The notes under the pieces are model-generated. The model did no database searches, was not told where the DNA came from, and saw nothing but the letters and a program-made list of their open reading frames with translations. From the NCBI RefSeq assembly GCF_006345805.1, contig NW_021823745.1, forward strand, positions 1 to 21,747: a stretch of 21,747 bases of DNA. Reading direction: 5' to 3'. A program made the translations under genes and the position numbers. The stretch is from Octopus sinensis (taxonomy: Eukaryota). Below are positions 338 to 21,634 of this stretch, one piece after another. Position 1 is the first letter of the stretch. Every line of letters begins with the position of its first letter.

Positions 338-963
338 TATTCTGTTGTGTCTGGGGAGAGTCATTTTCTTTTTGTGCCTTATGATATAACACACTCACAG
401 GGGAAAATTTCCATTTATTTCTTATTTTTATTTTCCTAAAATTTTCGTCGCATCTTGCAAACTTTTCAATAGTCTTGACTGTCCGTTATTTACACTGAAT
501 TCCTTTTTGTTTGTTTGTGTGCATGTGTGTGAGTCAGTGTGTGTGTGTGCATGCACGTATGTATGTATGTATGTATGTATGTGTGTATGCATGTATGCAA
601 GTGTGTGTAAGTATATATGTGTGTGTATGCATATGTATATATGTATGTATGTGTGTGCATCTGTATGTATGTATTCTGCATATTCATGTGCTTGCATGTT
701 AGTGTTTGTGTATTTTCTATGTGTGTGAGCGTGCGTTTGTATATGTATGCACCTCTGTCTCCTTGTGTGTGTGTGTGTTTTGCAACTAAGTACCATGTTT
801 ATATGTATGGATATGGATCTCTATATGGGTGGACCCGTGTCTCCATATGTGTCCTTGTGTGGAGTAAAGTGTGAGTGTATATATGGTCATGTGTTTCAGT
901 CTCTATTTGCATATATGTGCTTGTCTGTTCTTATAATCTATGTACCTATCTGTCTGTATGTTG
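338..963. repeat. Left arm of ~630 bp inverted repeat, including a compound TG/TATG microsatellite core
   Basis: Reverse complement of 2313-2958. 338-448 is identical to 2848-2958; the inner non-repetitive part is about 90% identical by eye. Confidence 0.95.
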
Positions 964-1106
964 AACTGTTTATTTTCATATCCATATGCTTACATACAAA
1001 AAAAAGAAAAAAAAATGTGCATACACACAGACATCTATCTACATAACAGTCCACTAACTATTCTACTCTACCTGTGTAAACTGTGAGTATGGAGGTATGA
1101 TATCTA

Positions 1107-2310: not shown

Positions 2311-2312
2311 AT

Positions 2313-2958
2313 ACATACAGATGGATGGGTACATAGATTATAAGAACAAACAAGCACACATACACAAATGGAGACTGAAACACATGACCATATATACAAA
2401 CACACTTTACTCCCCACAAGGACACATATGGAGACACTGGTCCACACATAAAAAGATCCACATCCATACACAGTACATAGTTGCAAAACAAACACACACA
2501 CAGATATGTATACACACAGACATGCACACACAAGGAGACAGAGGTGCATACGTATACAAACATACGCTCACACACACACATACATAGAAAATACACAAAC
2601 ACGGACATGCAAGCACATGAATATGCAGAATACATATATACAGATGCACACACATACATACATGTATACATATGCATACACACACATATATACTTACACA
2701 CACTTGCATACATGCATACATACATACACACATACATACATGCATGCATGCATGCATAGGCACACACACACATGCGCACAAACAAACAAAAAGGAACTCA
2801 GTGTAAATAATAGACAGTCAAGACTATTGAAAAGGTTGCAAGATGCAACGAAAATTTTAGGAAAATAAAAATAAGAAATAAATGGAAATTTTCCCCTGTG
2901 AGTGTGTTATATCATAAGGCACAAAAAGAAAATGACTCTCCCCAGACACAACAGAATA
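2313..2958. repeat. Right arm of ~630 bp inverted repeat, fused directly to the 5' truncation point of the Penelope relic
   Basis: RT-coding sequence switches to the inverted copy of 338-963 at ~2312/2313; the match ends at ACAGAATA (2958). Confidence 0.95.
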
Positions 2959-3640: not shown

Positions 3641-3744
3641 AATTAGAAAATGGAAATGAATTGAATATAAATGAATTTATTAATTAATCAATACCATCAC
3701 CTACAATTGTTTCATTTCATGAAGTCAAAATTACAAGACATATA

Positions 3745-3934
3745 AATAAAATTTTCATTTTAAATACCTTTGGTGAAAATCTTCAGGTTACATATAAAGA
3801 CTACATAGTGATTTGATGGAATATTCAATTTATACACAGAATATATATTTATGTTTACAATGTGTAAGTGTGTGTGCACGCATTGTTAAAAATATTCATT
3901 CATTTTTTTAATTCAGTATTACTAATAACAATAT
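3745..3934 (-). repeat. Outer segment of the left arm of the old inverted duplication (paralog of ~21338-21545)
   Basis: Reverse complement aligns collinearly with 21338-21545; shared blocks include ATTGTTATTAGTA, TGAATATTTTTAA, GTAAACATAAATATA, TGAATATTCCA and ATTTTCACCAAAGG. Confidence 0.85.
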
Positions 3935-5690
3935 CATTGGGCAAAAAAAACAAACTGTCATGCTATTTAAACTTTTTCAGATGATTTAGGGTAATTTTAA
4001 GGTACTGAATCTGAATCTGACATCAGTTTTCAGACAGCAAGTGTAGCTTTTTTAGTTATTCACAGCATCAGATTTTCCAACCAATTGATAATATTGACAA
4101 AGTAGTAGGCTATTTGCTTTCAATTTTCATTCATATACTCATCACGGAAACAAAAATAAGTGCTAATAGAGGTTAAATGTAGGTTACCTGTTAAATTGTC
4201 ACACAAGATGAGAATTTATTTTACTTTGTTATTGCTGTAATTATAGTAAAGTTCTCCTCACAGAAGGCTATTGATATTAAGTTATAGAAAGCCACTCAGA
4301 CACCCTTTCCTTGATAACTGCTAGTGCTGTTAAAACAAAGTACATCAAATAAGAGAGCCAGGTTACATGAAAAGCAGTTTAGTAGAAAGTTTAGTTATTT
4401 ATTAAAGTGATCAATCCTTGAAATTTAGAGATGGAAAAAATTGTTTCATGATAGCCATAGCTTCAGTACATTCTATAATAATTTCAATGATTTTTTTGAG
4501 AAATATATTTTGATGTTTTACAGTAACATTTACATTTGATTTATTTTATATTTTAGTTTACTGATAGTCTTCATTGAGTGTTGATTTAGGTTATTTCTGT
4601 TTATTTTTGATGAGGAGACAAGTTTGTGCTAATCCCCAGGACAGCTTTTGTTATGTGTGGAAAATTTACATCAAAAGATCAGAGAAATAAGCTTACAACA
4701 AAATTTTAAAATGCTTACAAGCTTTACTTTGGGTCCAAAGTTGGGGACCAAGATAAACTGTGGGCACCTCCTCTTTGTTGCAAAAGCTGCTACATAGCTC
4801 TAACCCAATGGTTGAAAGATAAACGGAAAAGTATGCGCAAACCAACAAACCACTATACCAATTGTTATTTCTGCTTAACTAATATCACAGGTTTCTCTAG
4901 GGAGAACAAATCCAAGATTTGTTTGTCGAGATTGCTCTTCAGCTTTAAAACCAGTTTCTCATGCTGCTGAAAATATTCCAATTCCAGAACCTCCTTCATC
5001 TTTTGACAAAGATAGTTTAAATGAAGAAAATACTGCATCTACTTCAATTGAAGGCATGTCAAGTGATACCGCAGATCACTGTGATGAACCAGGATCTTCG
5101 AAAAAAGTTCTGTATTTATTGAGTCCACTTGAGTTAAATGATTTAGTTAGAGACTTGGGTTTAACAAAAGAAAAGTCAGAACTACTGGGCTCCAGGTTGA
5201 AACAATGGAATCTTTTACACCATGTTATAAAATATTCGTACTTTCAAAACGGCATACAGAATTGCATTAATTCATTGCATGTAGGATTAAAGGAAATGTA
5301 TGAATCAATGGATAAAATTTTGCACTTGATTAAATATTCTGAACACAAGTGGAATATATGCAGGGACTTGAAAGTTATTGGTTTGCTTCTTGGGTTGCAA
5401 ATGGGGTATGTAAAGCATTAGTGCTTTTTGTGCCTTTAGAACAGCAGAGATGACAAGCATCACTATAATCAAAAACAGTGGCCAAAGTGAAGAGAATTCA
5501 CTCCAGGGAGATATGACATTAAATATATATCCCTTTAGTTGACCTTCAGAAAATTTTCCTTCATCCCTTACACATTAAATTTGGCTTGTTTAAGAATTTT
5601 GTTACGGCCATGAATGTAGACAATGAAGGATTCAAATATCTCAGTGAAAAATTTGTTTCTAGCATGAGTGAAACTAAAATCAAAGCTGGT
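3935..5690 (+). mobile_element. Degenerate Chapaev3-like (CMC) DNA transposon, left end plus 5' part of transposase; 3' part missing
   Basis: Paralogy to the other arm stops at 3934 and the element opens CATTGGGCAAAAAAAA (CAC-like terminus). The pseudo-ORF from ATG 4610 reads CANPQDSFCYV(CG)...GDQDKLWAPPLCCKSC...NHYTNCYFC...ELNDLVRDLGLTKEKSELLGSRLKQWNLL...WNICRDLKV...PLHIKFGLFKNFV. The superfamily name is from motif recall. Confidence 0.75.
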
Positions 5691-5820
5691 GGACAAGATA
5701 TCTCAAGAACAACCATATGAATTCAGATGAAACTTTCAGGGATGCTTGGCCTCATGGCTAGCATAAACTGATTAGATTTTGGGATCAATCTGGTACTGGA
5801 CAAGGATTCTAGATTATTTG
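5691..5820 (+). mobile_element. Fragment of a non-autonomous Helentron-associated (HINE/DINE-like) repeat
   Basis: CAAGATATCTCAAGAAC...GATGAAACTTTCAGGGATG...GATTAGATTTTGGGATC...GGACAAGGATTCTAGATTAT resembles the internal region of HINE-like elements; it abruptly replaces the transposase. Confidence 0.45.
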
Positions 5821-6207
5821 TTATATTTACTTAAGTATTACGATCTTACACTGAATTTTAAGTCTTTCTCTGATCATCTCCCTTGAAAGCACACCCATGG
5901 TTTCCACATAAGTTATGACAGTGTTGTTGCTTCCAAAGTATTATTTTGTTTCTCTAATATTAATTTTACACACATCTCTATCTTAGTAGAAACTGATGAA
6001 CAAAGAAATCAAACTACATAAACAAATGGCAGCAAAACTGCTCAGAAATTAAATAACACTAGAATATTTAGTAACAATAATAAATTTAATTTATCCTTGA
6101 TAATTTTTAGTTTTACCAATTTTGAATATATAGCTCCTGTTCAAAACCTCTTACCTACTTGGCAATTGCATTTCTAGCTCTGCCTTGAAGGAAGCTTTAC
6201 TTCTTGA

Positions 6208-6372
6208 ACTCACATTTTTGTGTGCAACGATGTTGTTAAACCTCCGTTAACAGCACTGTATGCAGGTCCTTTCCATTTTCTTTCACACATGGATACATTT
6301 TTCACTATAGACTTTAATGGTCATTAAGACACTATATTAGTGGATAGACTAAAAAAGGCTTTCATAGAGAAA
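6208..6372 (+). pseudogene. Ty3/Gypsy integrase C-terminal (GPY/F) fragment
   Basis: THIFVCNDVVKPPLTALYAGPFHFLSHMDTFFTIDFNGH*DTILVDRLKKAFIE matches the THVFVR.D....PL..PY.GPF.V.....F.I..NG..D.VS.DRLKPA consensus; one internal stop. Confidence 0.8.
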
Positions 6373-6460
6373 ACTGTTCCTGTTCCCAATGCAGACGACA
6401 CACATGCAGCATTACAAATATGGCCCCACACACCCACCTTCACATTCCATGACTACCATT

Positions 6461-6660
6461 GGGATGGATCAGATAGTGGATAAGGATTCTGGATTAATTT
6501 TCCGTGTTTTTTACTTAATTTTTGAGAGCAGTCAGGTTCATTTTTAGTATTCTCGTTTGTGAGAGCAGTTGAGTTTATTTCAGATATTCTCATTTTAAAA
6601 ATCCTCTCCAGTTAATCGTTGAGAGGACATTAGTGTTGCCTTGGTGGAGATTTGTGCTCT
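6461..6660 (+). mobile_element. 3' part of the same HINE-like repeat with subterminal CCTTGGTGGAG motif
   Basis: Restarts with a diverged copy of 5781-5820 and ends GCCTTGGTGGAGATTTGTGCTCT, similar to the CCTTGGCGGAGGTTTGCGCTCT 3' subterminal motif of such elements. Confidence 0.45.
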
Positions 6661-7529
6661 TGTTTAATATTCATATTTATATTTAAATTTAATAATGATA
6701 ATAATCAATTAAATTATATAAGAGTAGAAGTAGATAATTAAAATATATAATATCTTAATATAAAAAAAATACCCTGTCTGTGTGTGTCCTCAATGCATGC
6801 TCAAAGTTCTGAATTAATTTGTACCATACTTGGGGTACATGAATAATTTGACCTTGGAAAGAATAATGTAATCTTGATTTATTTTTTGTTTTTTAAAATA
6901 AATAATATTGCTCTATAGAAAAGATTCACTTGTTCAAATCGTTTTCTTAACTTCCTGTGCTTGAACTTCCTGTCTTTGATGTCCTAACACACATGTATGT
7001 ATACATTATTACAGTTGTGATGATTCTGACAAAAAGAATTTCTAAAGGTACTTTCATGTCAGAAAAATAATTTCATACGGAGACAGACACCATTTTTTCA
7101 GTTAATTAAATGAGGTACTATATACTGTACATTAATTTTCCAAAACATATTTTGGCCATTTTGGGAACAAGTGGCTTTATTAAGACTTGATATTTCACAT
7201 TTAAATCCCATGTGATTATTCTTGATGCAAATCAACTTATTAACACTTTCACTTAATTGTATTGTCAATGTCAACATAGTAACTAAGTAAACAGCTATTT
7301 ACACACACACACACACACACGTATGCATACATCATTACAGTTGTGACGATTTCAGATAAAAAACAAATTCTAAATTCACTTACATTTTATATTTTCTTCT
7401 CTGGCTTTCTATTTGTGTAAGATATATACTTATGTGAGTGTGTGTGTGTGTGTGTGTGTGTAAGAGAAAAAAAATTTCATATGGAGATTTCATTTAATTG
7501 ATCAATTGTCAACAGGGCATAATTACAGA

Positions 7530-7900
7530 TTTCTGCAACCCTCAGAGACTTTGGATGATCATAACTTTAAGAAAAATGGATATTTTTTAATGAAATTTTC
7601 TACGAATATGTTCTATATCATGTAGATTCTGAATATATAAAATTTGTTGGGGGAAGTGTTCACTGGAGTCCTCTTCAATCTGCTTAACTTTCACGAAAAT
7701 GGATATTTTTAAATGAAATTGTTGACAAATATACCTTGGACTATATACATATAAGATTTTGTGGGAAATCCTATATGTACATATAGGAATTTTGGGGTGG
7801 GGGGAAACAATTGGGGATTATTTTTCAGAACTGTTCCTCATTCGGAGGTGTTTTGGAACAAGTCATCCGTATTTGTTACATTTTCTCTCTTTTGTGCATC
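7530..7900 (+). repeat. ~370 bp repeat, inverted diverged partner of 8530-8905
   Basis: Collinear blocks ACTTTGGATGAT, AAAAATGGATATTTT, AAACAATTGGGGATT and GAACAAG are shared with the reverse complement of 8530-8905. Confidence 0.8.
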
Positions 7901-8109
7901 CATAGATTTCTACTGAAGCAACAGGCAATGAAAGCAAATGAACCCCTCATCAGAAAACTCATGCTAAAAATAACAGCTGAACGTATGGTACACAGATATA
8001 TGCTTCTAACATGACTTATCTATTGCATACATTTTTTTTTTCACGGAAGTAAATTCCCAGGTAAATGGTTCTAATAGAAAGGGAGAAGACATCAGAGGCA
8101 AAAATAAGG

Positions 8110-8225
8110 AAGGAATTACAACCATGTTTCGTGGTCTGCTACCACAACAGCTCCTTTATAGGATCCAGTTAGCTCAAGACATCATCAGGAGGAACCACGT
8201 CCAGTTTCGGCCCCTACTCCTCTAC
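8110..8225 (-). ncRNA. Cluster of degenerate type I hammerhead-ribozyme-like motifs (probable Penelope pLTR relic)
   Basis: The minus strand has CCGAAAC (around 8208), CTGATGA (8188-8182), and a unit at 8156-8110 with stem I AAGGAG/TTCCTT, stem II GTGGT/ACCAC, GAAA, stem III ACA/TGT and a GTA site. Its CUGAUGA core has decayed to CTGTT. Confidence 0.45.
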
Positions 8226-8529
8226 CGTTTATAAATGCACAGTTAAATATAGAAGTGTAAAGTATAATTTGTTACATAATCTCTAAAATAAACATGATAC
8301 TGAATGGAATAATTCCTCATTTGATCTTTTTTCATTATATGTGTGTGTGTGAGGACACTGAAAATAAGCATGCTACCCTTTTGTGCTTTTGTTTTTTCTT
8401 TGTATTCCCACCTTGTCTCCAATGGAGATTCTGAATATGCAAAAAATCTACTTTTAGACTTTTTAATACACCCACTCCTTAACTTTTCAATTTTTTTCTT
8501 GAAATTTTACAACTAGGGTTAAGGGTTAT

Positions 8530-8905
8530 ATACAGGTGCACAAACACACAAAACGGAGAAACTGAAACAAATATGGATAACTTGTTCTGAAACATCCTCC
8601 AGTGGGGAATAGTTCACAAAAAGAATCCCCAATTGTTTTCCTCCCAAATCCTATATGGATGGAATCTACATACTTCAAGGTATATTTGTATTAAAGAATA
8701 TCCATTTTCTTAAAGTTAAGACAAATTCAAGTGGATTCCGGTGAATTTTCCGAAAATCCTCCTCCAACCCTGATAAAATACTTTTTCCCCCAAAATTTGT
8801 ATGTTGGGAATCTACGTGATATAACACATATTCATTAAAAATTTCATTAAAAATATCCATTTTTCTGAAAGTTATCATCATCCAAAGTTGGTGGGGAGGG
8901 GCAGA
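8530..8905 (-). repeat. ~370 bp repeat, inverted partner of 7530-7900
   Basis: See 7530-7900. Confidence 0.8.
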
Positions 8906-8909
8906 AAGC

Positions 8910-9520
8910 CTGTGGTGAGATGGTACCAACTGTCAATGATCTCATAATGCATGTGCTCCCAAACATTGCACAAAACTTTAGCAACAGTCAATGGCTCTGT
9001 GAGTGAGCCATCTTAGTTCCATGTAATGATGCTATTAACAAAATCGATTGGGATCTCTTGTAGTTGTTGCCTGGACAATAACAGTCTTTCAAACTAAGTT
9101 CTTGAACTCTCTACAGCCATCTGGGACGCTACCTCATCACTTAACACTTAAAAAGGAGGCCCCAATCATGCTGCTCAGGAATCTGGAATCACCTCGTCTG
9201 TGCAATGGCACCAGACTGGTGATGAAAGTGATGTGACTCCATGTCCCAGAAGCAATAATTATGACCAGGAACTATAAGGGTGAAGATGTCTTCATTCCAC
9301 AGATCCTGTTAATCCCACATGACATCCCCTTTGAATTTAAATGGTTCCAGCTCCCAGTGAAACTAAGTTTCACTATGTTAATAAATAAGGACAGTCTCTC
9401 TTGTTAAACATCACCTTGCTTCTCGCATGGGCAATTATATGTAGGATGTTCGCAGGTTGGAAGTCCCCAAAATCTTTTCATTTATACACCAATTAAAGAC
9501 ACACTCTAAACATCATTTAG
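8910..9520 (+). pseudogene. Helitron PIF1-family helicase, C-terminal fragment
   Basis: NDLIMHVLPNIAQNFSNSQWLCE*AILVPCN, FLNSLQPSGTLPHHLTLKKEAPIMLLRNLESPRLCNGTRL, GEDVFIPQI..IP.DIPFEFK.FQLPVKLSFTMLINK, FSHGQLYVGCSQV; multiple disablements. Confidence 0.93.
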
Positions 9521-9887
9521 AAGCTCTAGATAATTAAACTGTGACTGATTGCTGGATTTGTTTCAATACATTGTTTATACTCACATCATCACATAAAATT
9601 TTTATTAAATGTACTTATTAACAGGAGGAGAGGGCTGCGACTGGTTCTTCTCAAATTTACGCACTTTCAGGTTCAATGCATTTCAAATAAGTACTGATAA
9701 TTGAAGGTGATTGCAAAGACAAAGAACTACCTGGTCTTTAACAGTTCTAACAGTGAAAACATTGAATAAAACATGTTATTGACATTAATAGTTTGTACCT
9801 CAGCTAATTACTGTTTGAGAACTGCATAATCCAGGTTCATTTTAGTTAGGGATTTAAAAGGCATATTTAAATTTCATTATTTCCAAT

Positions 9888-9940
9888 AACCTGGGAAACG
9901 GCAGGTTTATTATGTATAAAGTTGGTATCTCAGCTACTAG
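9888..9940 (+). other. Internal (upstream) Helitron 3'-end copy: hairpin plus CTAG
   Basis: Perfect 6 bp stem AACCTG-GGAAACGG-CAGGTT (9888-9907) and CTAG at 9937-9940. The preceding ~45 bp are duplicated before the terminal hairpin at 10013-10030. Confidence 0.7.
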
Positions 9941-10041
9941 GAGGTAAGACCAGTGTAGTCTGTGTTTCATGTTAGAGATCTAAAAGGTATTTTTAAATTT
10001 CATTTTTCTTTAACCTGGGCAACAGTAGGTATTTCAGCTAG

Positions 10042-10652
10042 TAATAAAAATTAGATAAGGCAGCAGAAATAATGAATATAGAATAAATAAGATAAGATAA
10101 AAATTAGAAATAAAGGGAAAGTTTTGTGGGAATTCATGCACAATTATACATCTGTGTGTGTATATGCATACATGGATTACATTGAGGAGCACTCCAATGG
10201 TTATGATGACAAAGGTCCTAGCTGATATGATTGACAGGACAGCTTGCTCATGAAATTAATGTGCAAGTGGCTGAGCACTCCACAGACATGTGTACCCTTA
10301 ACGTAGTTCTCAGGAGATTCAGCATGACGTATGCTGGCCCTTTGAAATACAGGGCTACTCGATTTTGCCAGCTGAGTGAACTGGAGCAATGTGAAATAAA
10401 GTGTCTTGCTCAAGACAACAATGCATCACCAGGAATCGACTTATGATCTTATGATCATGAGCTGAATGCCCTAACCACTAAGCCATGTGCCTTTACTATG
10501 CATAGATGGATTATATTATGTGTATATGTATACATGGATAATATTGTTGGTATTTATACAACATAATAAATAAAAAAAAAAGGTAAATAAGTAAGGAGAA
10601 TAAGGAGTAAAGAATAAATAAAAATATAAAGGTGAAATAAATTTATTATGTG
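10042..10652 (-). repeat. Inner segment of the left arm of the inverted duplication (paralog of 17188-17473), interrupted by a SINE
   Basis: Reverse complement matches AAATTTATTTCACCTTTATATTTTTATTTATTCTTTA, TAAATACCAACAAT.TTATCCAT and TATTTATTCTATATTCATTATTTCTGCT at 17190-17460. Confidence 0.9.
10184..10496 (-). mobile_element. tRNA-derived SINE (cephalopod type) with 21 bp target-site duplication
   Basis: A box TGGCTTAGTGG (10485-10475), B-box-like GTCGATTCC (10440-10432) and central CTTGAGCAAGACACT. TSD 10163-10183 TATGCATACATGGATTACATT versus 10497-10517 TATGCATAGATGGATTATATT. Confidence 0.9.
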
Positions 10653-11109
10653 GTTATTCTTATTTATTTAATTAATTAATTCATCATTATTTCTGCTTAC
10701 TTCTTTATGTTATTTTATTATATATTTATAGCCCGGTGTTGCCCGGAATTAAGTTAGGATTTAAAGTGATCAAACACATTATTTCAACCAAAATAAGTGA
10801 CACCGACATCAAATTTGAGCAAAATCCATTGAAAATTGGTATACTATTGGCTGAAGATGGGATTGCAGGCAATTTGATTATGAAATCCCATAAGGAATTG
10901 GTTTATCAATTATTTCCATTCAGCGATTGTTTATTATTTTTTTTGAGAACTTACATTATTCAAAAATCCATGGGTCCTAAGTAATGCTGGCATCAAGTTT
11001 GGGGAAAATATGTCAAAATATGTGAAAGTTATGGTTGAAAATGGGGGTGTAGCCAATATTAGTAGGAAATCCTATAAGGAATGGTTCATCAATTTTTTAT
11101 CCTGATTGA

Positions 11110-12560
11110 ATGGAAAAACCTCAAATGGATGCCTGCCACCAATAGTGTTTGGCCTTGGGATTTGTTGATGGACATGGTGAAGCATGATCTCACTGGGAAC
11201 TGCAGAGGTTAAATGGCATGTCTGACCCTGAAGGATAAAGCTGCATCCTTGAAATGAAAATATTTTCACCCCTCCCGCACCCTGTAACAATGGTGGCCTC
11301 AGTCAAGTGGGGTGTCAGATACTTGATTACTAAGCAGGTCCCTTTGCACTGTTTAGGCGGAAGCAAGTTTCTAATTAGCATAATGGGCATCCAACCCTTA
11401 GCCTAAGAATGGAGTGGAAGCCATGTTGGCTCCAATGAGTGGAGAAACTCGATAGAGTAAATGGCAATGTCTTGGGGGGTCAGAGTCTGGTCAATTGATT
11501 TGTAGATGCACTCCTCACCTGGGAATTCGGCTTATGAGCTGGTCGTTGATAGCACTGACAGCTACGTTTTTTGGGGGCCAGGATGGTTCTTTCACTGAGC
11601 CAATTGATGTCTGCATAATTACTTTCCAGATTGGGGAACACTGTTTCCAAAAGATCAGAAGGGTTGTCCACAGTGTTGCACAATCAGAGATGGATATGTC
11701 CCCCCTATAATTCCTAGGGTCCTCGCCTAGGGTTAAAATGACTTCAGCAAATGCTGCAAACGTGCTATCACCAAGCAAGTGTGCACACATGTTTGCGCTT
11801 AGGCTTAAGGTCTTAACCTGGAGCCACAACGTTGATGACTTAAGGCATGCACGCACTTCATCAGCCTGGCTCCCTTTAGGGATGACAGGAAGTGTTTGCC
11901 AGAAATCTCCTGAAAGCAATAGAGTTACACCACTCATAGAAGCTGTAGAATCCCTAATACCTTTCAGTGACTGGTCCAGTACCTCAAGGGCAACCTTACT
12001 GGTTATTGTGCATTCGTCCCATACGATGAGATGGCACTAAGAACTTCAGCTTCCTCTGAAATTTTGCCAATCTTGCAAGTAGGAACTTTGGCCCTCACCA
12101 AATGTAAAGGCAGCCTGAATGCCGAGAGCACCATCCTACCTCCTGGCAATAACGTAGCAGCGATTCCCGAGGAAGCAACTGCTAGTGCAGTTTGTTTCTT
12201 GCAATGAATATTATCAAGTATTAATTGTGTTACAAAGGATTTGCTGGTACCTCTAGCAGCATTGAGGAAAAAAATGCCGCCCACCTGTTTTTCAATGGCA
12301 CTGATGACAGTTTTGTACACTAGCCTCCAATCAGGCAGCAATTTTGGTTCATTTACTCTCAGGTACTCTGCAAGGCCATCAGCGTCATATGACAAGTCCA
12401 GATGTAACTTTGGTAGGAGTGTGTTAATGCCCTGTCGCAATGAGGATGGCAAACCGAATGTGTTCAACGCTGCCCCACCCATTCTGAGCAGGGGCATCCT
12501 TGATTTCAATCAGCCCATTATTGTAGATTCAGGTCATTGTATCCAATGTCAGCATTAGGC
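11110..12560 (-). pseudogene. Helitron PIF1-family helicase relic (near-complete helicase, no Rep/HUH domain seen)
   Basis: FFLNAARGTSKS (decayed Walker A), AVASSGIAATLLPGGR, WDECTM (Walker B, ~12030), GDFWQTLPVIP, WLSERTILAPKN, IMLIRNL, CFTMSINKSQGQTL (~11185-11142). Confidence 0.95.
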
Positions 12561-13080
12561 ACTGTTGCTTTGCCAGTCATCATTTGCCTGACCACTAAGA
12601 AAGCAAAATTACATACAGAGAATTTCATAAACAGAAATGAATGGAAGAAGGTTTTAAATTAAATTTAGACTACACCTTGCACGATTTTCACTAAGTAAAA
12701 AAAATTCGATTTTTTGCTTGTAATCAACTACCATGGCCACCGAATATGCTACAAAACCCTTTTTGTGGTCCAAAAAAAGGGTGGGGTGTGTGGTGGAAGC
12801 TTCTGAAATTTCACCCCCACCCATTGATCTTTTCACCATCGATTTTTCAATGTACGTGGAAAATACGGAGATAAGAATATGGAAAAATTTTTTTTTACTC
12901 TCAAATTTACCATGAAACACTCCAGGCAAATTTTTAGATAAATCTCACACAATTTTCACTGAGAAAAAAAAATCGGATTTTTTGCATGGAATCAACTACC
13001 CTGGCCTCCTAATATACTACAAATACCCATTTATATTGTGTAATTCATTGAAAAATTGTTACCTAACTCTTTGTTTCCGT

Positions 13081-15345
13081 CATCGTCATCATCACCGTCA
13101 TAATCATCATCATTGTTCAACGTCCGTTTTCCATGCTAGCATGGGTTGGACGGTTCGACTGGGGTCTGAGAAACCAGGAGGCTGCACCAGGCTCCAGTCT
13201 GATCTGGCAGTGTTTCTACAGCTAGATGCCCTTCCTAACGCCAACAACTCTGTGAGTGTAGTGGGTGCTTTTTATGTGCCACCGGCACAGGCACCAGGCG
13301 AGGCTGGAATGGCCACGATCGGCTGGTGCTTTTTATGTGCCACCGGCACGGAAGCCAGTCGAGACGGCGCTGGCATCGGCCACGTTCGGATGGTGCTTTT
13401 TACGTGACACCAGCACAGGTATCACAACTACAATTTCCATTTGATTTTTATTTCATGTTGATGTACTTGACTCAATAGGTCTCCTCAAGCACAGTAGGCC
13501 ACCCTACAAGATAAGCACAACAGGCCGTCCTGTGATCCAAGGTACTTTGGATGGGCTGGGGCTGCTACATGAAGCTGGTGCAGGAGACAGCCATGAACTC
13601 ACGTTATTTGTCGGGTTTTCAGTCATAGCATACCTCCAGAGTTCTCGGTATTTCGTCATTGCCTCTGTGAGGCCCAACGTTCGAAGGTCATGCTTGACCA
13701 CCACATCCCATGTCTTCCTGGGTCTACCTCTACCCTGGATTCCTTCAACTGTTTGGGAGTTGCATTTCTTCACGCATCTCTCCTCATCCATCTGTAGTAC
13801 ATGACCATACCAGTGCAAATGTCTCTCTTGCACGCCACATCCAATGCTTCTTATGTTTAACATATCTCTCAGTGAGCTTACACACTGTCGTGTGCGTACA
13901 CTGGCATTACACATCCTTGGTAGCTTTATTTCTTTCAAGCCTATGCATGTCCTCTGCAGTCACAGTCTATGTTTCACTACAGTGAAGCATTGTAGTTCAC
14001 ACACATGCGTCGTACAATCTACCTTTCACTCTGAGCAAGAGACCCTTTGTCACCAGTAGGGGTAGAAGCTTTCTGAACTTTGCCCAGGCTATTCGTATTC
14101 TAGTGGTGACACTCTATGAGCATCTACCGCCACTACTAACTTGGTCACCTAGGTAGCGGAAACTATCAACTACTTCTAGTTTCTCTCCCTGGAGTGTGAT
14201 GAAATCTGTTTTCTGAGTATCTGTGGTGTCTATTGCCCCTGTGCATCTGCCGCACACAAAAGCTATCTTGGTTAATTTTCCTTTGGTGTTGCTGCACCTC
14301 TTATGCATCCATAGCTTACACTGGGTACATCTTATGGAGTTTCTACCTACACCTTTTCTACAGATTGAGGGTGTGTGTGATGAGTTTGCCTTCCTACTTA
14401 CTATAACTTTAGTCTTTGATACATTGACTCTAAGGCCTTTTGATTCGAAACCTTGCTTCCACAGCCGAAATTTCTTTTCTAGTTCTGGTAGTGATTCTGC
14501 TATGAGGGCCAGGTCATCAGCATGGAGGAGCTCCCAGGGGCAACCTGTTTTGAATTCCTCTGTTATTGCCGAGAGGATTATGATGAATAAAAGGGGACTG
14601 AGGGCTGAACCTTGGTGGATCCCTACTTCTACTCGGAATTATTTACTATACTTGTTGCTAATCCTAACCTTACTAATGGCCTCTCAGTATAGGGCCTGTA
14701 CAGCCCTTATTAACCATTCGTCAATCTCCAATTTCCACATCGCCCACCAGATAAGGGATCGGGGAACCCTGTCAAAGGCTTTCTCCAAGTCCACAAAAGC
14801 TAAGTACAGGGGTTTATCTTTATCTAGGTATTTCTCATGCAGTTGTCAAACCAGGAATATGGCATCAGTGGTGCTTCTACCCAGAACAAAACCGAACTGC
14901 ATCTCATCTCTCCCTAATGAGATGGGCTATGACCCTCTCAGTGACAGTCATCACCTGATCCAGCAGTTTAATACCCTTGTAGTTATTTCTATCTAGAGCA
15001 TCACCTTTACCCTTGTAGCAGTTGACTATGATGCTGCTACACCAGTCATTGGGTATGACTCCATTATGAACTACCTGGTTTACAATGCATGTGACTAGGC
15101 CATAGCCCACTCCACCAGATGTTTTAAGCATCTCAGCAGTGATTCCTGATAGGCTGGGGGCTTTTCCTGGCTTCATACCCTTAATTGCTTTACCTACTAG
15201 GGAGCTGTCTATTCGGATAGCTGGTCCTTCTACTGGGTTAACATTTGGCAGGGTCTCCTCCTCCCATTCATTCTCTACATTCAGCAGTCTTTCATAATAG
15301 CTTCTCCAAGCCTCTTTCTTTTCAGAAACATTAAATGCAAGTCTT
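13081..15345 (-). mobile_element. 5'-truncated RTE-clade LINE (RT domain, 3' UTR, (GAT)n tail) nested in Helitron 2
   Basis: MKPGKAPSLSGITAEMLK, NYKGIKLL, QFGF, FVDLEKAFDRVP, GIHQGSALSPLLF, LLHADDLAL, FRYLGD, RGRPRKTWD; tail at 13081-13115; several stops and frameshifts. Confidence 0.95.
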
Positions 15346-16316
15346 TTCAGAAACTTAATGTTTCTATGTTGTTAAATACATAGATTCTCAACAAAACACT
15401 TTTTTCCTCAATGTAAAATAAAAACAAACTCTTTCTTGTCCAAAGTAATGTGTGTGTGTGTGAGAGAGGAGGGGGGCAGGGAGAAAGATGAACAATTTAA
15501 AATAAATAAATGATTTAAAATAGGAATACTAAATTTCTAAATCTCTTGTAGAGACATGTATGGTGGTGGGGCGATAGAATGGTTGTATACTGTCAATCTA
15601 ACACGAACGTGACAGTAGGGGGGTACACCACCGCTGTTTAGCCCTAAGAAGCATCGACGCCTCCTGATGGCTTAGACACATTTTTCCTGTGTCCTTACAT
15701 ACATTTACGAAGGGGAGACAAATACTCCCAGCCGCCCGGGCTGCATCTAGGGACACATGTTTCAGGATTTAAAATAAATATATTTTAATTGTTGTGTGAG
15801 AAAGTATATATATAATCTGATTATAAAGTATAGTGTCTTTCAAAAACATCCTAAATTTGAATACTATATCTCGTGTATAAGAAAAAAAACATTTTACAGT
15901 TTTATTTTTAGTGAACACTGTCACTTACTCTATCTCTCCCTCACACACACACATCAACACACAACATCTGTCTCCCTCACACACACACATACATACGTCA
16001 ACACAACTTCTCTCTCCCTCACATACACACACACACACATTTTCACTTCGTTATGGCAAAAAGGAACTTAACTCATGTTAGCAAACTTCAAAATTGGTAA
16101 AAGTTAAGGCTGAAAATCGATTTTTAATACTACCCGCTAGTGCTTCGGGAAAAATAATTTGATAAAAATACAGTTAGGGTCGTGACAAATGTCCTCCTAA
16201 AATTGGAGCGACATGCGTGCTAATTTGTGGACGTGCATAAATTACATTCACGTACACACATCCTGCCTTTTATATATACAGATAAATACCAACAATATTA
16301 TCCATACACGCATATA

Positions 16317-17071
16317 CATCATCATCGTCATCGTTTAACGTCCGCTTTCCATGCTTGCATGGGTTGGATGGTTTGACGGCTGGTGAACCAGATGGCTGCA
16401 CCAAGCTCCAGTCTTGATCTGGCAGAGTTTCTACAGCTGGATGCCCTTCCGAATGCCAACCACTTCGAGAGTGTAGTGGGTGCTTTTACGTGCCACTGGC
16501 ATGGGGGCCACACAGGCGGTACTGGCAACGACCTTGCTCGAATTTGTTTTTACACATGCCAACGGCACAGGTGCCAGTAAGGAGATGCTGGTAACGATCC
16601 CGCTCGAATGGTGCCTCCTACATCCCTCCTACAAGCCAGGTAGCCACTCTGGCAACAATCATGCTCAGATGGTGCTCTTAGCACCCTACTAGCACAGGAC
16701 ACAAGTGCCAGTAAGGCGAAGCTGGCAATGATCACGATCATATGGTGCTGATGCCCGTCATCGAATTTCACTTTGATTTTGATTTCGGTTTCGATTTCAC
16801 TTGCCTCAACAGGTCTTCGCAAGCAGAGATTAGTGTTCAGTGAAGGAAAAGGTCCGCACAAGTGGGCTGGTTACACCCCTGGCACAGGCAAACAAGGTTA
16901 TGATCTCATTTGGCTTGCCGGGTCTTCTCAAGCACTGCATATTTCCAAAGGTCTCGGTCACTAGTCATTTCCTTGGTGAGTCCTAAAGTTCGAAGGTCGT
17001 GCTTCACCACTTCATCCCAGGTCTTCCAGGGTCTACTTCTTCCACAGGTTCCCTCAACCGCTAGGGTGTGG
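16317..17071 (-). mobile_element. Second, heavily 5'-truncated RTE copy (RT C-terminus, 3' UTR, (GAT)n tail)
   Basis: GRSRPWKTWDEVVKHDLRTLGLT is homologous to 13660-13750; the 3' end 16317-16500 is homologous to 13081-13290. Confidence 0.93.
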
Positions 17072-17187
17072 AAATATAAACTAATGAACTAATGAAATAA
17101 CTAGAAATAAACATCTGTATATGCAAGCACATATAGAGATACTAATATATAAACAAGATACACCCATACATGTATGCACGTGCATAA

Positions 17188-17533
17188 ACACATAAGCAAA
17201 TTTATTTCACCTTTATATTTTTATTTATTCTTTATTCCTTATTTCTGCTTACTTATTTACCTTATTTTATTTTATATATTATATTTTATAAATACCAACA
17301 ATGTTATCCATATATAGCTATCCACATACACATAATATAATCCATGTATGCATATACACGCACATGCATTCACGCATAAACAAATTTTACTTCCCCTTTA
17401 TTTCTATTTTTTATTCTTATCCTATTTATTCTATATTCATTATTTCTGCTACCTTATTTATTTTATTTTATTATATTATATATTTTAATCATGTACTTTT
17501 ACTCTTCTATAATTTAGTTGATTGTTATCATTA
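17188..17533 (+). repeat. Right-arm AT-rich segment made of diverged ~190 bp tandem units; empty site for the SINE and both Helitrons
   Basis: Matches the reverse complements of 10042-10652 and 6693-6752 (54/60 identical for the latter). Confidence 0.9.
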
Positions 17534-18031
17534 CCTGTAGCTCATACAGAACCTCAACGCATCGAGGGAGTTGCTGAACCAACCACTCATGAAGTAATAG
17601 CCATTGGAGTGCTGGAAGATGTGGTAGATCTGCAGGCATTCATTGGAAACACAGCTAAGGATCTCAGCTGTGTTCCTCCAAAAAGCGCTTTCCGCCTTGG
17701 CCGACCAGGATCCAAACCCAGGCTGATTAGGCTGATGTTTACAAACTTTACTGAGGCGCGGGCATTCCATCTGGCTGCTGATAGAGCTCGGTGCGACAAC
17801 ATAATCAACTTTAGGACACGTCCCGGCCTACCACCTGATGTACGCCCAAGGCTAAGATCTGTAGCTTCCCTAAATCGCGACTCTATGCCACAGGAAAGTT
17901 TTAGCCTCTGCGATAATGGGCAAATCTGGAAATTTGTCAAGTCTGGTGAGTCGTGGATAAGGGATACCAGTTGGACTGAGCAAACTGCACCCATAACAAC
18001 AACTGGCAATACAAAAATCTTGGGAAACTAA
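17534..18031 (+). pseudogene. CR1 ORF1 C-terminal remnant (open, ends ...KILGN*)
   Basis: Open frame with FRLGRPGSKPRLIRLMF and RPGLPPDVRPR motifs typical of the ORF1 C-terminus; stop TAA at 18029-18031. Confidence 0.7.
18022..18028 (+). promoter_or_regulatory. Candidate -1 ribosomal frameshift heptamer G_GGA_AAC
   Basis: X_XXY_YYZ in ORF1 phase (TTG GGA AAC TAA); the -1 frame leads straight into the APE domain. Confidence 0.5.
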
Positions 18032-20846
18032 CCAAGAACAATCAGCCATCCCCTGTATATCATCATCTGAAATCCAGATACAAACTGCTGTCCTTGAATG
18101 CCCGTAGTTTATGCAACAAGGTGCATCTTTTTGACTCTTACGTCAAAAGTATCAACCCAGATTTCATCACAGTCACGGAAACATGGGCACATTCTGTACT
18201 CTGTCATTAAGTTTTCAACATAGCCGGCTACAACCTGTTCCGCAAAGACCGCATTAATCGCCGTGGAGGGAGTGTGATGATTTATGTTCCATCAAATCTA
18301 TTGGCAATCCCCTGTGAGGATTTGAACCGATCTCAGGAGGAAGTATTTTTCTGCAAAATATACATGACCATGTCAACACTTCTGCTTGGAGGTGTTTACC
18401 GCCCCCCCAAATTATCGTCAAGACACACAGCTTTTTGACATCCTCAGAGCTGCTGCTATGAAAACAGCCACGTATGTTTATGTTGCGGGCGACTTCAATT
18501 TCCCTGAGATTGACTGGGAGGCCTTCCGTTGGCCGCAAAGTGCAGACGATTTCCTCGAACTGGTGCTGAATTCAAATTGGTCCCAAGTAGTTACCTCCCC
18601 CACAAGGAGTAACAACACTTTGGATCTGCTACTTACCGCTTCTCCTGAAACAATCATTAGTGTCACTACTGAAGAACCTTTTAGGTGACTGATCATTCCA
18701 TGATCATGGCCGACTTGTCTCTGATTGGTTGTAACAAAAAACACAACCATCTTCAGACTGTCCGCTTTGACTGGAATAAAGCAGACTGGAGCCCTTATTG
18801 TACAGAGTGGCAACGCCAAAACTGGCTCGAACTTTATGCCTCTGGAGATGTGGACACTATACTCCAGAACATTCTGAATTCAATATGGGCAGCATGTGCA
18901 GCATCAGTACCATGCAAGCACAAAAAAACACCCAATAGTGCAATTTGGGAGACTGCAGCAGTTCGACTTGCCAGGAAAGAATGCCAAAAGGCTGAACCTC
19001 ATCATCATCATCATCATCAGGATTACAAATAGCACAAATCAGAGATCAACAGGAAAAAGCGCAATAGGTCAGCCAACCACCTCAAGCAGGTGACAAAAAA
19101 GGCAGTGCTTGAATTTGAACAACGCATTGCAACCAACCCTGACAGCAAAATGTTCTGGAAGTATGTGCACTTAAAGCAGAGACCTCACTTTCCAGTTGGT
19201 CCCCTTCGCAACCCCCTCAAAGGACAGATTACTGGCAATCCCAAAGAATGTGCAGAAATCATTGCTGGATGCTATACCGGCATCTTTACTGTCGAAGACC
19301 AAAATGTTCCATCTTCATCACCACTGACATTGGACTCTATATCTACTATGCAATTTACACCAGCAATGTTACAATGCCACCTTAAGAATAAACGCAACTA
19401 TGCCTCTTCTGGTCTCGATGGTGTTACATACCTACTCTCAAATGCGGTGGGTACTTTCTTCTAAGCAAACTTTCTCTATTCTTCCAATGGTGTTACTCCA
19501 GAGCAGTGGAAAACTGCCAGTGTTATCCCTCTGTTCAAAAAGGTGGACCGCACTCGCCTGTCAAACTATTGCCCCGTTAGTCTTACTAGCTGCATCGCCA
19601 AACTGATGGAATCCTGTATCAGGGAAACCCTCTGGAACTTCTGGAAGTCTCACAGCCTCATCCAGCCGTCACAATTTGGATTTATCCCTAACTCCAGCTG
19701 CTGTAATCAACTCATCGAGTTTCTTCAGGACGTTACCCAAATCACTGATTGCAGATCCTGAGTGGATGTTGTTTACCTGGACTTTGCTAAGGCTTTTAAC
19801 TCTGTGCCATGCAAAAGACTTGTGGTGAAGCTCTCTGCGTTGGGCGTAAGAGACGAACTCTATAACTGGTTGAAGTCCTTTATTTTCGGCCAAAAAGAGG
19901 TTGTCACAGTTCTAGGACAGCACTCTTCACCCTATGAGATGACATCTGGTGTACCACAGGGATCTGTTCTTGGCCCCCTTTTATTTGTTGCATATGTTAA
20001 TGATATAGATGCCAACTTAAAGAATGCCACAGTGCTGAAATATGCAGATGACATCAAGCTGTACCTCGAAATAAAGAGGTCAGATACTGTACACTATAGA
20101 TCTCTATTGCAAGCAGACCTGGTCACAATGCAGCAGTGGGTCATGGACTGCCAACTCAAGCTGGTTGTGGACAAATGTACCACCATGCATTTTGGGAGGA
20201 GAAACCCAGCATCCACCTATTCCATCCACAACACTAGTCTCAAAAAGTCTTTGTGTGAACGTGACCTGGGTGTTATTGTCGACAGTGATTTGCGTTGGAC
20301 AAAACACATCGCTAAATTGTCAAGAAGGCTGAGGGTGTCTTGGCATCACTCATCAAATCCTTTGTGAGCCGCTCTCCGACTATCTATCTGCGGCTTTATA
20401 TAGCTATGGTAAGACCTCACCTGGAATTTGCATCACCGGTCTGGAACCCCTATCTTGCCCAGGATATCAATCGTCTGGAAGCCGTTCAGCGACGTGCAAC
20501 CAAAAGAATACCCTCCATCAGGCATTTGCCATATTCTGAATGCCTTACTTCCCTGGGCATGGACACATTGAAACTCCGACATCTGGCAGCTGACTTGGCA
20601 GACACCCATAAAATTATCAACTATCATACAAACAATAACTCTGAGCACCTTTTCAAACCCCACCCGTCTAACACCCATGGACATATTTACAAAGTCAGAA
20701 AACAGCACAGCTCCCATGACTTTAGGAAACATTTTTTCACGCTGAGAGTTGCTGAAGCATGGAACAAACTGCTGGCATCGGTTGTTAGTTGTCGGAGCAC
20801 TGCATCCTTCAAAACTTCCATGCTTTCTGAGATTCGCCAAAACTAA
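18022..20846 (+). pseudogene. CR1 ORF2: apurinic endonuclease plus reverse transcriptase, disabled
   Basis: LNARSLCNK, VTETW, GYNLFRKDR, GGVYRPP, AGDFNFPEIDW, LDLLL, DHS; PVSLTS, QFGF, YLDFAKAF, SGVPQGSVLGPLLF, KYADDIKLY, HLEFASPVWNP, FFTLRVAEAWNKL. Stops and frameshifts at ~18208, 18405, 18686, 19030, 19460, 19759 and 20330. Confidence 0.95.
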
Positions 20847-21011
20847 ACCCGATTTCCACCCCTCCATACACACATAAGCATGTATCTGACTCATACATTG
20901 TTTGCTTTCCAGACATTTGTACATTACTGCATACGCTTTATACGCACTTTCTGACAAGTTGTGGTGCACCTGAGCACTGTATACAATAATTTCATTATTA
21001 TTATTATTATG

Positions 21012-21545
21012 ATTATTAAACTTCAATATAAATATTAATATCAAATAATGTGTGAATGAACTTTTATTGCTGCTCTTATGTATTTATGTAGATAAATAAA
21101 AAACTTAGAAAGTAACATATATACACATGTAAGTTGATATATAAACCATTGGCATCCATAATTATTGTGTGTATGTATATCTGTGTGTGTGTGTGTGCGT
21201 ATATATAAATATGAGCATAGACATGCGCACACACATATACAAACATGAACATAAACTTTATTTCTCTTTCATTTTAATTTTATTTCATTTTATCAGTAAA
21301 TAATGTTCCTCTTATATAGTATAAATCATTATTCATGATTGTTATTAGTAGTAATATTGAATTTAAAAATAAATGAATATTTTTAATGCATGCATGCACA
21401 CACACACATATACATAGTAAACATAAATATATTTTCTGTGTATATTTGAATATTCCAGTAAATCGCTATGTAGTTCACATATTGTCCTTTTATGCACCCT
21501 GAAAATTTTCACCAAAGGCATTTAAAATGCAAAATTTATTATATA
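21012..21545 (+). repeat. Continuation of the right arm beyond the CR1 (paralog of 6661-6695 and 3745-3934 reverse complements)
   Basis: ATTATTAAACTTCAATATAAATATTAATATCAAA resembles the reverse complement of 6661-6695; 21338-21545 resembles the reverse complement of 3745-3934. Confidence 0.8.
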
Positions 21546-21634
21546 TATAAGAGAGAGTTATTAATTTGTTTGTCAACCAAAATAAAACTAAATGGTTCAG
21601 GGAAAGCTATTATGTTTTATCTATCTATATTATA

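Follow-up and report, generated by a model that had tools for sequence, protein, structure and literature searches.

An inverted repeat with arms of under one kilobase within an 18-kb nest of transposable elements in Octopus sinensis

The window, a 21,747-bp stretch of Octopus sinensis DNA (contig NW_021823745.1, positions 1 to 21,747), contains a sequence of ~0.6–0.9 kb present in two head-to-head copies and later swollen by at least six transposon insertions to 17.8 kb (~18 kb). Self-BLASTN of the window revealed a minus-strand chain of five collinear matches (E 1e-10 to 2e-55; about 90% identity at aligned bases) pairing 3740-10657 with 17184-21546 (Table 1). This anti-diagonal bears out the inverted duplication proposed in a preliminary description of the locus, with coordinates agreeing within a few bases. 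No annotated protein was found in or near the window by exact look-ups; the homologues recovered were paralogous copies of transposable elements (TEs).

Table 1. Arm-to-arm matches, arm domains, spacer pieces and insertions in the window.
Feature	Positions	Strand	Basis
Match	3740-3932 ~ 21546-21338	minus	self-BLASTN, E 1e-45
Match	6660-6705 ~ 21048-21003	minus	self-BLASTN, E 3e-9 (whole window), 2e-10 (sub-region)
Match	6693-6771 ~ 17533-17455	minus	self-BLASTN, E 9e-22
Match	10039-10183 ~ 17473-17334	minus	self-BLASTN, E 8e-29
Match	10484-10657 ~ 17366-17184	minus	self-BLASTN, E 2.5e-54
Left arm, outer domain	3740-3932	.	reverse complement of 21338-21546; 171/189 aligned bases identical (90.5%), K2P 0.10
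Left-arm insertion 1	3933-6659	+	TE-like ORFs 4710-5717; missing from right arm, where 290 bp of unrelated sequence lie instead
Left arm, middle domain	6660-6771	.	matches 21048-21003 (43/49), then 17533-17455 (69/79)
Left-arm insertion 2, composite	6772-10038	+	unclassified 6772-7547; nested long-TIR element 7548-8888; Helitron-1 3' part
Left arm, array unit L_b	10039-10183	.	partner U_b (17334-17473), 118/129 identical (91.5%)
SINE-like dispersed repeat in left arm	10184-10497	-	20-bp TSDs 10164-10183 / 10498-10517, 18/20 identical
Left arm, array unit L_a	10498-10657	.	partner U_a (17184-17353), 160/173 identical (92.5%)
Spacer U_0, piece 1	10658-10726	+	plus-strand homology to right-arm units
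Helitron 2	10727-16281	-	PIF1 helicase 11075-12509 (Pfam, E 2e-42); A|T insertion site in spacer
Spacer U_0, piece 2	16282-16318	+	16282-16306 ~ 17288-17312 (96%, plus); also ~ 10557-10521 (minus)
RTE#2, 5'-truncated RTE-like LINE	16319-17071	-	3' end at 16319; direct repeat with RTE#1 (13099-13760 ~ 16317-17069)
Spacer U_0, piece 3	17072-17183	+	diverged unit tail, contiguous with right arm
Right arm, U_a, U_b and inner part of middle domain	17184-17533	.	self-BLASTN, Smith-Waterman
CR1-like non-LTR retrotransposon in right arm	17534-21002	+	ORF1-like region, APE endonuclease, RT, (ATT)n tail
Right arm, outer part	21003-21546	.	middle domain 21003-21048, right-only 290 bp, outer domain 21338-21546

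Without the nested TEs the arms measure ~0.6 kb (left) and ~0.9 kb (right) around a middle of 218 bp, and the long inverted repeats make up most of the de-nested structure. Both arms are modular, with unique outer and middle domains followed by two ~184-bp units each; 290 bp of the right arm (21049-21337) have no left counterpart. Piecewise Smith-Waterman alignment gave an arm-versus-arm identity of 87–92.5% at aligned bases (~561/619 positions; K2P 0.08–0.14), or ~83% once indel columns are counted as mismatches. Artificial palindromes are known to occur in long-read assemblies, for instance from chimeric palindromic reads, and near-identical arms would be expected of them. Here, however, the arms differ by ~10% in substitutions and by many indels, and the TE insertions differ between them, bordered by their own target-site duplications (TSDs), which makes an assembly artefact scarcely credible.

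The tandem array has a period of ~184 bp (17176-17288 ~ 17360-17487), and its units contain 28-bp sub-repeats. Across the arms the units pair like with like: L_a matches U_a at 93%, and L_b matches U_b at 81–91% rather than the 'a' units. Different units are less alike (68–83% for 'a' versus 'b'; 63–86% among the a, b and 0 units overall). Because same-unit pairs across the arms are closer than different units, the array was already old when it was copied.

Between the arms, orientation does flip within the AT-rich array, as had been suggested for ~10652/10653, but the centre is not a perfect palindrome: a 218-bp single-copy spacer lies there. Past ~10653, plus-strand homology to the right arm sets in (10654-10723 ~ 17411-17476; 10667-10730 ~ 17219-17283), and the spacer is a third array unit, U_0, which keeps the phase of the right arm alone, in head-to-tail order. 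Split by Helitron 2 and RTE#2, its three pieces have no left-arm partner; when joined, they align with U_a in one block running over both insertion junctions (95/111 identical; score 94, with shuffled sequences reaching at most 37). Left arm and spacer meet in a 4-nt overlap, TTAT (10654-10657), with no filler. These four bases are the reverse complement of 17184-17187 and also the first bases of the spacer, and the observed junction, ...TTATGTGG-TTAT-TCTTATTT, is one base off that predicted from priming at 17184-17187. In DNA of ~75% A+T such an overlap is weak evidence, its random expectation being a few percent by rough estimate. A 4-nt overlap is equally expected from a central deletion in a foldback element.

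For comparison we used 231 kb of other O. bimaculoides and O. sinensis DNA (11 loci, ~0.01% of a genome). Together with Pfam domains, family copies at these loci bore out the TE identities by class. The SINE-like repeat gave 12 HSPs in 7 of the 11 loci, and neither ARAGORN nor Rfam called a tRNA in it. In the CR1-like element, Pfam recognised APE and RT over 17522-20843 (RVT_1, 6e-30, plus Exo_endo_phos); the best protein matches were Octopus 'jockey-like' RTs (81–85% amino acid identity), and two other copies defined the family's 3' end and (ATT)n tail. Insertion 1 had been labelled Chapaev3, which was not borne out: it showed no Pfam match, no terminal inverted repeats (TIRs) and no relatives in the 231 kb. 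Within insertion 2, the nested long-TIR element is related to one found at O. bimaculoides locus L006, and the Helitron-1 3' part contains a Pif1 2B domain (Pfam, 9039-9233), a duplicated 3' hairpin and a CTAG end at 10036-10039.

The idea that each arm preserves the empty site of the other's insertions holds cleanly for two elements. The target site of the SINE-like repeat is present once in the right arm (17334-17353), and left-arm positions 6693-6705, where the two middle-domain matches overlap by 13 nt, are the empty site of the CR1-like insertion (TSDs 17521-17533 / 21003-21015, 13 bp, 11/13 identical). The two large left-arm insertions are less clean. Opposite insertion 1 the right arm has its unmatched 290 bp; over the site of insertion 2 it is unbroken (17455-17473), and the flanks of that insertion overlap by 13–19 nt of low-complexity A-rich sequence, a candidate TSD.

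For Helitron 2 and both RTE elements the empty-site argument does not apply: they lie in, or inside elements in, the unpaired spacer, where the other arm offers no empty site, so that they may be older or younger than the duplication. Copies of Helitron 2 occur at 10 of the 11 loci (85–88% identical) and define its termini as 5'-TC and 3'-CTAG; the window's copy lacks the last 7–9 nt at its 3' end. Its interior holds RTE#1, nested at 13099-15358 (Pfam RT 13507-15371), and an unmatched 243 bp at 15523-15765. RTE#2 is 81–89% identical to an RTE copy at another locus (L002). The relative chronology is thus that the SINE-like and CR1-like elements entered after the duplication, and RTE#1 after Helitron 2. 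All target sites are AT-rich, and the element classes inserted here favour such targets in general, so nothing specific speaks for the structure having been a TE landing pad, and the suggestion is superfluous.

Arm segments scored 57–207 bits against the partner arm and at most 40 bits against the rest of the window and the 231 kb (microsatellites excepted), which rules out AT-richness as the cause of the pairing. No second arm copy appeared in JGI metagenomes or in a protein-level search with an arm ORF. The SINE-like, Helitron, RTE, CR1-like, inverted-repeat (338-2958) and nested long-TIR families of the window all recurred in the 231 kb. These counts bear on a chance encounter of two independent copies of an ordinary dispersed repeat, neighbouring and in opposite orientation, as might arise in a repeat-rich genome in which every other block of the window is a TE and many recur even in a small sample. 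However, zero arm matches in 231 kb correspond to a density below ~0.013 per kb (95% bound, our own calculation), at which an independent opposite-strand copy within 0.2–3 kb has a probability of ~0.1–2%. Moreover, module order is common to both copies, the left two-unit array matches the right unit for unit, and the right copy continues in phase into a third unit directly abutted by the left copy. Chance pairing is thus very improbable, and the arms are not a high-copy dispersed repeat in this sample. Zero matches were likewise obtained for insertion 1 and Helitron 1, which are undoubtedly pieces of TEs; given this and the small sample, a low- or medium-copy arm family is still compatible with the data.

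Both origins offered in the preliminary description, a fold-back rearrangement seeded in a minisatellite and a foldback-type element, thus survive as leading explanations. With a probability of about 0.45, we favour a single, old, local inverted duplication, made by fold-back or template switch, rather than a mobile element. The arms are module-by-module copies with order kept; the inverted copy adjoins its parent, with a single-copy spacer contiguous with the parent and short inverted microhomology at the junction of spacer and inverted copy; and no other copy of an arm module occurs in the rest of the window or the 231 kb, where other window families recur. Mechanistically, the ancestor would have been a unique AT-rich region with three or more diverged ~184-bp tandem units (U_0, U_a, U_b) behind it. 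Breakage or fork stalling within U_0 would expose a 3' end that folds back and, through inverted microhomology of 4 nt (ATAA/TTAT), anneals where U_a begins, ~220 bp away. Extension over ~0.9–1.2 kb and joining of the new tract to the other side at 3739/3740 would then yield two inverted arms around the 218-bp spacer, in phase with the right arm; a staggered-break micro-inversion could give the same product. Later the arms diverged by ~10% and received the arm-specific SINE-like repeat, CR1-like LINE and two composite blocks; the arrival of Helitron 2 and the RTEs in the spacer may have preceded or followed the duplication. These central insertions may incidentally have stabilised a hairpin-prone palindrome. 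The structure requires no function.

Fold-back inverted duplications are recognised by a spacer that is single-copy and adjoins the parental sequence without a break, with 2–8 bp of junction microhomology; human cases have tracts of kilobases to megabases and spacers of 766 bp to 70 kb (Hermetz et al. 2014, PMC3907307). The octopus locus shares the inverted copy beside its parent, the spacer contiguous with the parental arm and the few-nucleotide microhomology exactly at a junction without filler. In contrast, its tract is only ~1 kb, its spacer (218 bp) falls below the human minimum unless Helitron 2 was already present, and the event is ancient, fixed and known from one genome, with the second join at 3739/3740 assumed. 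Since fold-back usually copies far more than 1 kb, a second switch or an end-joining step must indeed be assumed. Templated inverted insertions also occur at breaks, the yeast cases given in PMC11724301 spanning 5–34 bp.

At Drosophila inversion breakpoints, inverted duplications arise from staggered breaks. There too, inverted copies flank a central segment, with one arm-centre junction ancestral and the other new; the octopus centre, however, is tiny (0.2 kb) unless Helitron 2 is older.

The locus may instead be an old, non-autonomous member of the foldback-type DNA transposons (such as FB, Tetris or Galileo), a serious contender that we nevertheless hold at less than even odds. Its TIRs would comprise the unique flanking domain and ~184-bp repeats (2 versus ~2.8 per arm) with essentially no middle domain, inserted by a transposase encoded elsewhere, possibly into a TA run. 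The architecture of unique outer domain and tandem repeats in long, AT-rich, non-coding arms is of the foldback-transposon type. It agrees point by point with Tetris of Drosophila virilis, which has long TIRs, a flanking domain, ~220-bp AT-rich tandem repeats in unequal numbers, a small non-coding middle and TSDs of 8–10 bp (Dias et al. 2014, PMC4079207). Tetris, FB, Galileo and the octopus structure share a flanking domain and ~200-bp AT-rich repeats in arms of unequal repeat number, a short non-coding middle and no ORF of their own. The array units have their own 28-bp sub-repeats, long-TIR elements with sub-repeats exist in the octopus genome (the nested 7548-8888 element among them), and zero matches in 231 kb hold for insertion 1 and Helitron 1 as well. 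Mutator-like and foldback elements are reported to have 8–10 bp TSDs and to target TA microsatellites (PMC4079207; PMC4486113).

At the outer ends a TA-rich direct repeat, AGACATATA / ATATATATA (7/9), could be a decayed 9-bp TSD. It was chosen from 31 x 31 offsets and is not significant; its ATATA is self-complementary and also aligns within the arms, and the offset scan returned only TA-rich, self-complementary candidates indistinguishable from chance or arm alignment. Unlike Tetris, the octopus structure comes with no second copy (window, 231 kb, arm-ORF protein search, JGI metagenomes), clear TSD, recognisable terminal motif, transposase or autonomous partner found, its arms are ~10% diverged, and what would be its 'middle domain' is just an additional right-arm array unit. 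To account for a left arm that ends at the U_a boundary when the right side runs on in phase through a further unit, a transposon would need to be asymmetric or to have suffered an extra central deletion.

Either origin is a known kind of thing, and the locus is a worked example rather than a new principle. If the favoured local event is correct, this would be an ancient duplication by fold-back or template switch resolved in full, with spacer, junction and microhomology legible after ~10% divergence, and would illustrate how palindromes persist through central insertions. If the locus is a foldback transposon, it would be a TE type not previously described in octopus, as far as our literature search shows; that search returned no paper combining octopus, transposable elements and foldback. 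Foldback elements elsewhere are known to seed satellites and inversions. Tentatively, and at odds well short of even, the locus could be the first copy to be recognised, in cephalopods, of a hitherto undescribed foldback-type (Tetris/FB-like) DNA transposon family, whose ~184-bp AT-rich repeats might give rise to inversions and to minisatellite or satellite arrays in the genomes of octopuses. The internally dated insertions provide a small relative chronology of TE activity in octopus.

When the 21,747-bp window was compared with itself on both strands, five minus-strand matches (window-wide E-values from 3e-9 to 2.5e-54) formed a single collinear anti-diagonal and recovered the inverted arms of the preliminary description with coordinates correct to within a few bases. 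Piecewise local alignment of the arms gives 87-92.5% identity at aligned bases (~561/619 positions, K2P 0.08-0.14), with ~50 additional indel columns; it was used in place of a single global alignment of the de-nested arms, which misplaced the outer domain because of a 290-bp segment found only in the right arm. AT-richness does not account for the matches: microsatellites excepted, the arm segments reach at most 40 bits elsewhere in the window or in 231 kb of DNA from other Octopus loci. This comparison set, 231,159 bp in total, was drawn from two annotated Octopus assemblies (O. bimaculoides and O. sinensis) as eleven 20-kb loci that surround paralogous TE genes, and doubled as a small genome sample and as the source of family copies. 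The locus is a real, old and well-resolved inverted repeat of a known kind.

Coordinates of the arms and of the elements within and beside them, with the number of the eleven sampled Octopus loci matched
Feature	Positions	Strand	Location or source	Sampled loci matched
Arm match	3740-3932 ~ 21546-21338	minus	self-comparison	
Arm match	6660-6705 ~ 21048-21003	minus	self-comparison	
Arm match	6693-6771 ~ 17533-17455	minus	self-comparison	
Arm match	10039-10183 ~ 17473-17334	minus	self-comparison	
Arm match	10484-10657 ~ 17366-17184	minus	self-comparison	
Left-arm pieces (4)	3740-3932, 6660-6771, 10039-10183, 10498-10657		three insertions between	
Right-arm pieces	17184-17533 and 21003-21546		CR1-like LINE between	
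Arm modules, spacer, flanks				0/11 above microsatellite level
Insertion 1	3933-6659		left arm	
Insertion 2	6772-10038		left arm, composite	
Nested long-TIR element	7548-8888		insertion 2	2/11
SINE-like element	10184-10497		left arm	7/11
Helitron 2	10727-16281		spacer; bounds from family copies at other loci	10/11
RTE (family)				4/11
RTE#1	13099-15358		nested within Helitron 2	
RTE#2	16319-17071		spacer	
CR1-like LINE	17534-21002		right arm	2/11
Inverted repeats of the element at 338-2958				3/11
Pif1 2B domain	9039-9233	+	Pfam	
PIF1 helicase	11075-12509	-	Pfam	
RT (+PHD) fragment	13507-15371	-	Pfam	
APE+RT non-LTR element	17522-20843	+	Pfam	

The inner end of either arm consists of two diverged ~184-bp AT-rich units, L_a and L_b on the left and U_a and U_b on the right. 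The units pair across the arms (L_a with U_a at 93%, L_b with U_b at 81-91%) but 'a' and 'b' units share only 68-83% identity, indicating that the two-unit array predates the copying and had already diverged. Downstream of 10657 the self-comparison shows a plus-strand match to the right-arm units; array sequence resumes for 37 bp at 16282-16318, before RTE#2, and again at 17072-17183, leading into the right arm. When joined, 10654-10726, 16282-16318 and 17072-17183 form one block whose alignment to U_a spans the two insertion junctions (95/111 identical; score 94, shuffle maximum 37). A third array unit, U_0, thus forms the 218-bp spacer between the arms. U_0 continues the right-arm array head-to-tail and in the same phase, and has no left-side partner. 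The left arm joins the spacer at 10654-10657, where TTAT both begins the spacer and is reverse-complementary to 17184-17187, with zero filler bases. Unrelated nested TEs plus a single array unit account for the whole inter-arm sequence, and a giant long-TIR element of Polinton/Maverick type was rejected on that ground.

Two origins fit these data nearly equally, with a slight edge to a one-off local inverted duplication (probability of roughly 0.45), because a single event accounts for the centre's asymmetry together with the microhomology junction that lacks filler, and because the window and the 231-kb sample showed no second copy. Fold-back inverted duplications carry a single-copy spacer contiguous with one arm and short inverted microhomology at the junction between spacer and inverted copy (PMC3907307); here too the spacer is contiguous with the right arm and the microhomology lies exactly at the junction. 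Mechanistically, the broken end of U_0 would prime at 17184-17187, and the junction so predicted is the observed one within one base; since only ~1 kb was copied, a second joining step would be needed at 3739/3740. A staggered-break micro-inversion would be another route to the same product.

A single copy of a foldback-type transposon is a serious contender for the origin. Its architecture would be that of Tetris (PMC4079207): long inverted arms that hold a flanking domain and AT-rich tandem repeats of ~200 bp, in numbers that differ between the arms, around a short, non-coding middle. The outer ends carry a TA-rich direct repeat, which is not significant but could be a decayed 9-bp duplication; that no second copy was seen in the window or the 231-kb sample counts against this origin. 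That two independent copies of a dispersed repeat were paired by chance is very improbable: by our own calculation from the 231-kb sample, the density of the arm family is below ~0.013 per kb (95% bound), which makes the chance juxtaposition of two such copies in opposite orientation within 0.2-3 kb unlikely, at ~0.1-2%. An assembly artefact we regard as more improbable still. The arm family may be of low or medium copy number, which is compatible with the sample; insertion 1 and Helitron 1 (a 3' part inside insertion 2) likewise have 0 matches in it. Scans of JGI metagenomes with arm motifs returned nothing, or four chance 23-28-mer matches without extension. A protein search with the ORF spanning the right-arm units gave no match, an uninformative result given that Octopus shotgun data are barely represented in the collection.

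The proposal that each arm is the empty site for the other holds cleanly for the SINE-like and CR1-like insertions and less cleanly for the two large ones in the left arm. The SINE-like element is bounded by 20-bp TSDs (10164-10183 and 10498-10517, 18/20 identical) and the right arm has this site once, at 17334-17353. For the CR1-like element the TSDs are 13 bp long (17521-17533 and 21003-21015, with 11/13 identical) and follow an (ATT)n tail that is also present on two other copies of its family; 6693-6705 of the left arm is the corresponding empty site. The right arm cleanly lacks insertion 2, whose flanks overlap by 13-19 nt of low-complexity sequence. The correspondence is imperfect for insertion 1: the right arm lacks it but has 290 unmatched bp at the same site (21049-21337), so that one arm also underwent a deletion or a second insertion. 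This right-only segment has a (CA)n core and no relative in the 231-kb sample; a search for a left counterpart through the left flank and insertions 1 and 2 yielded only (CA)n-driven matches, which were rejected. It may be an insertion in the right arm or reflect a left-arm deletion exactly where insertion 1 sits.

The proposal does not extend to Helitron 2 and the two RTEs, which lie in the unpaired spacer or nested within it and so are not datable by an empty site in the other arm. Distance to the consensus of sampled copies was tried as a clock for Helitron 2 (0.08 to its own consensus, versus ~0.05 per arm), the SINE-like element and RTE, and left unused as unreliable: the SINE-like element, although necessarily younger than the arms, scored 0.18, owing to its subfamily and composite structure.

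Pfam was run on stop-to-stop ORFs joined by X. Among proteins, the RT and PIF1 helicase of the window are closest to predictions from O. bimaculoides and O. sinensis (60-85% amino-acid identity), which marks the window as octopod. The ORFs at 4710-5717, formerly labelled Chapaev3, had no Pfam match, and a search of insertion 1 for terminal inverted repeats found none. Rfam and ARAGORN gave no match in the window, and neither recognised a tRNA-like head in the SINE-like element, whose tRNA origin is thus putative. This element seems composite: its halves (~10188-10353 and 10354-10496) mostly match different places in other Octopus loci, and occur together only at L009 among those sampled.

The 5'-TC end of Helitron 2, adjoining a host T, is defined by four copies (the window, L003, L004 and L005), while its 3' hairpin (CCGGGCAACACCRGG) and ...CTACTAG, followed by T, were read from two (L002 ~11428, L005 ~11291). 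In the window copy the final 7-9 nt of this end are lost or mutated, and an extra 243 bp (15523-15765) is present that every other copy in the sampled loci lacks. Helitron 1 carries its 3' end twice in tandem, hairpin (ACCTGGGAAACGGCAGGT) included (9845-9906 and 9971-10030, 124-126 bp apart), which gives two candidate termination signals. The RTE copies at 13099-13760 and 16317-17069 share 3' ends and orientation at only ~75-78% identity, and each ends in an (ATC/TGA)n-type tail adjoining the target; they inserted separately and differ in age or subfamily.

Another inverted-repeat structure, unrelated to the first, occupies 338-2958. Its two arms (338-961 and 2313-2958; 86% identity across 662 bp) bracket ORFs on the minus strand (1110-2337) that show RT-like motifs and, by eye, GIY-YIG-like ones (...YSIRC...YIGET...). 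These motifs suggest a Penelope-like element; Pfam returned nothing for the ORFs at E<=0.01. Its arms are a dispersed repeat, with matches in L002, L004 and L005 of up to 92% identity. Within insertion 2, the 1.3-kb element at 7548-8888 begins ACTTTGGATGAT and has ~349-bp inverted arms, 68% identical, which contain ~123-bp sub-repeats (7562-7609 / 7685-7732). No TSD was seen for it, and relatives are present at two O. bimaculoides loci (L006, 8247-8846, and L001); it represents a genuine long-TIR family, foldback-like and dispersed, in Octopus.

Six primary insertions within ~1.7 kb of ancestral sequence is dense. AT-rich sites are favoured by target-primed retroelements and Helitrons, and here the SINE-like element has the target ATGCATACATGGATTATATT, the CR1-like element ATTATTATCATTA and Helitron 2 A|T. 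The idea of a TE landing pad has no specific support, as every target is AT-rich and no evidence links the insertions to the inverted arrangement as such. It is reasonable to infer that the insertions in or near the centre, with the spacer widened from 0.2 to 6.5 kb, may have helped the palindrome to survive.
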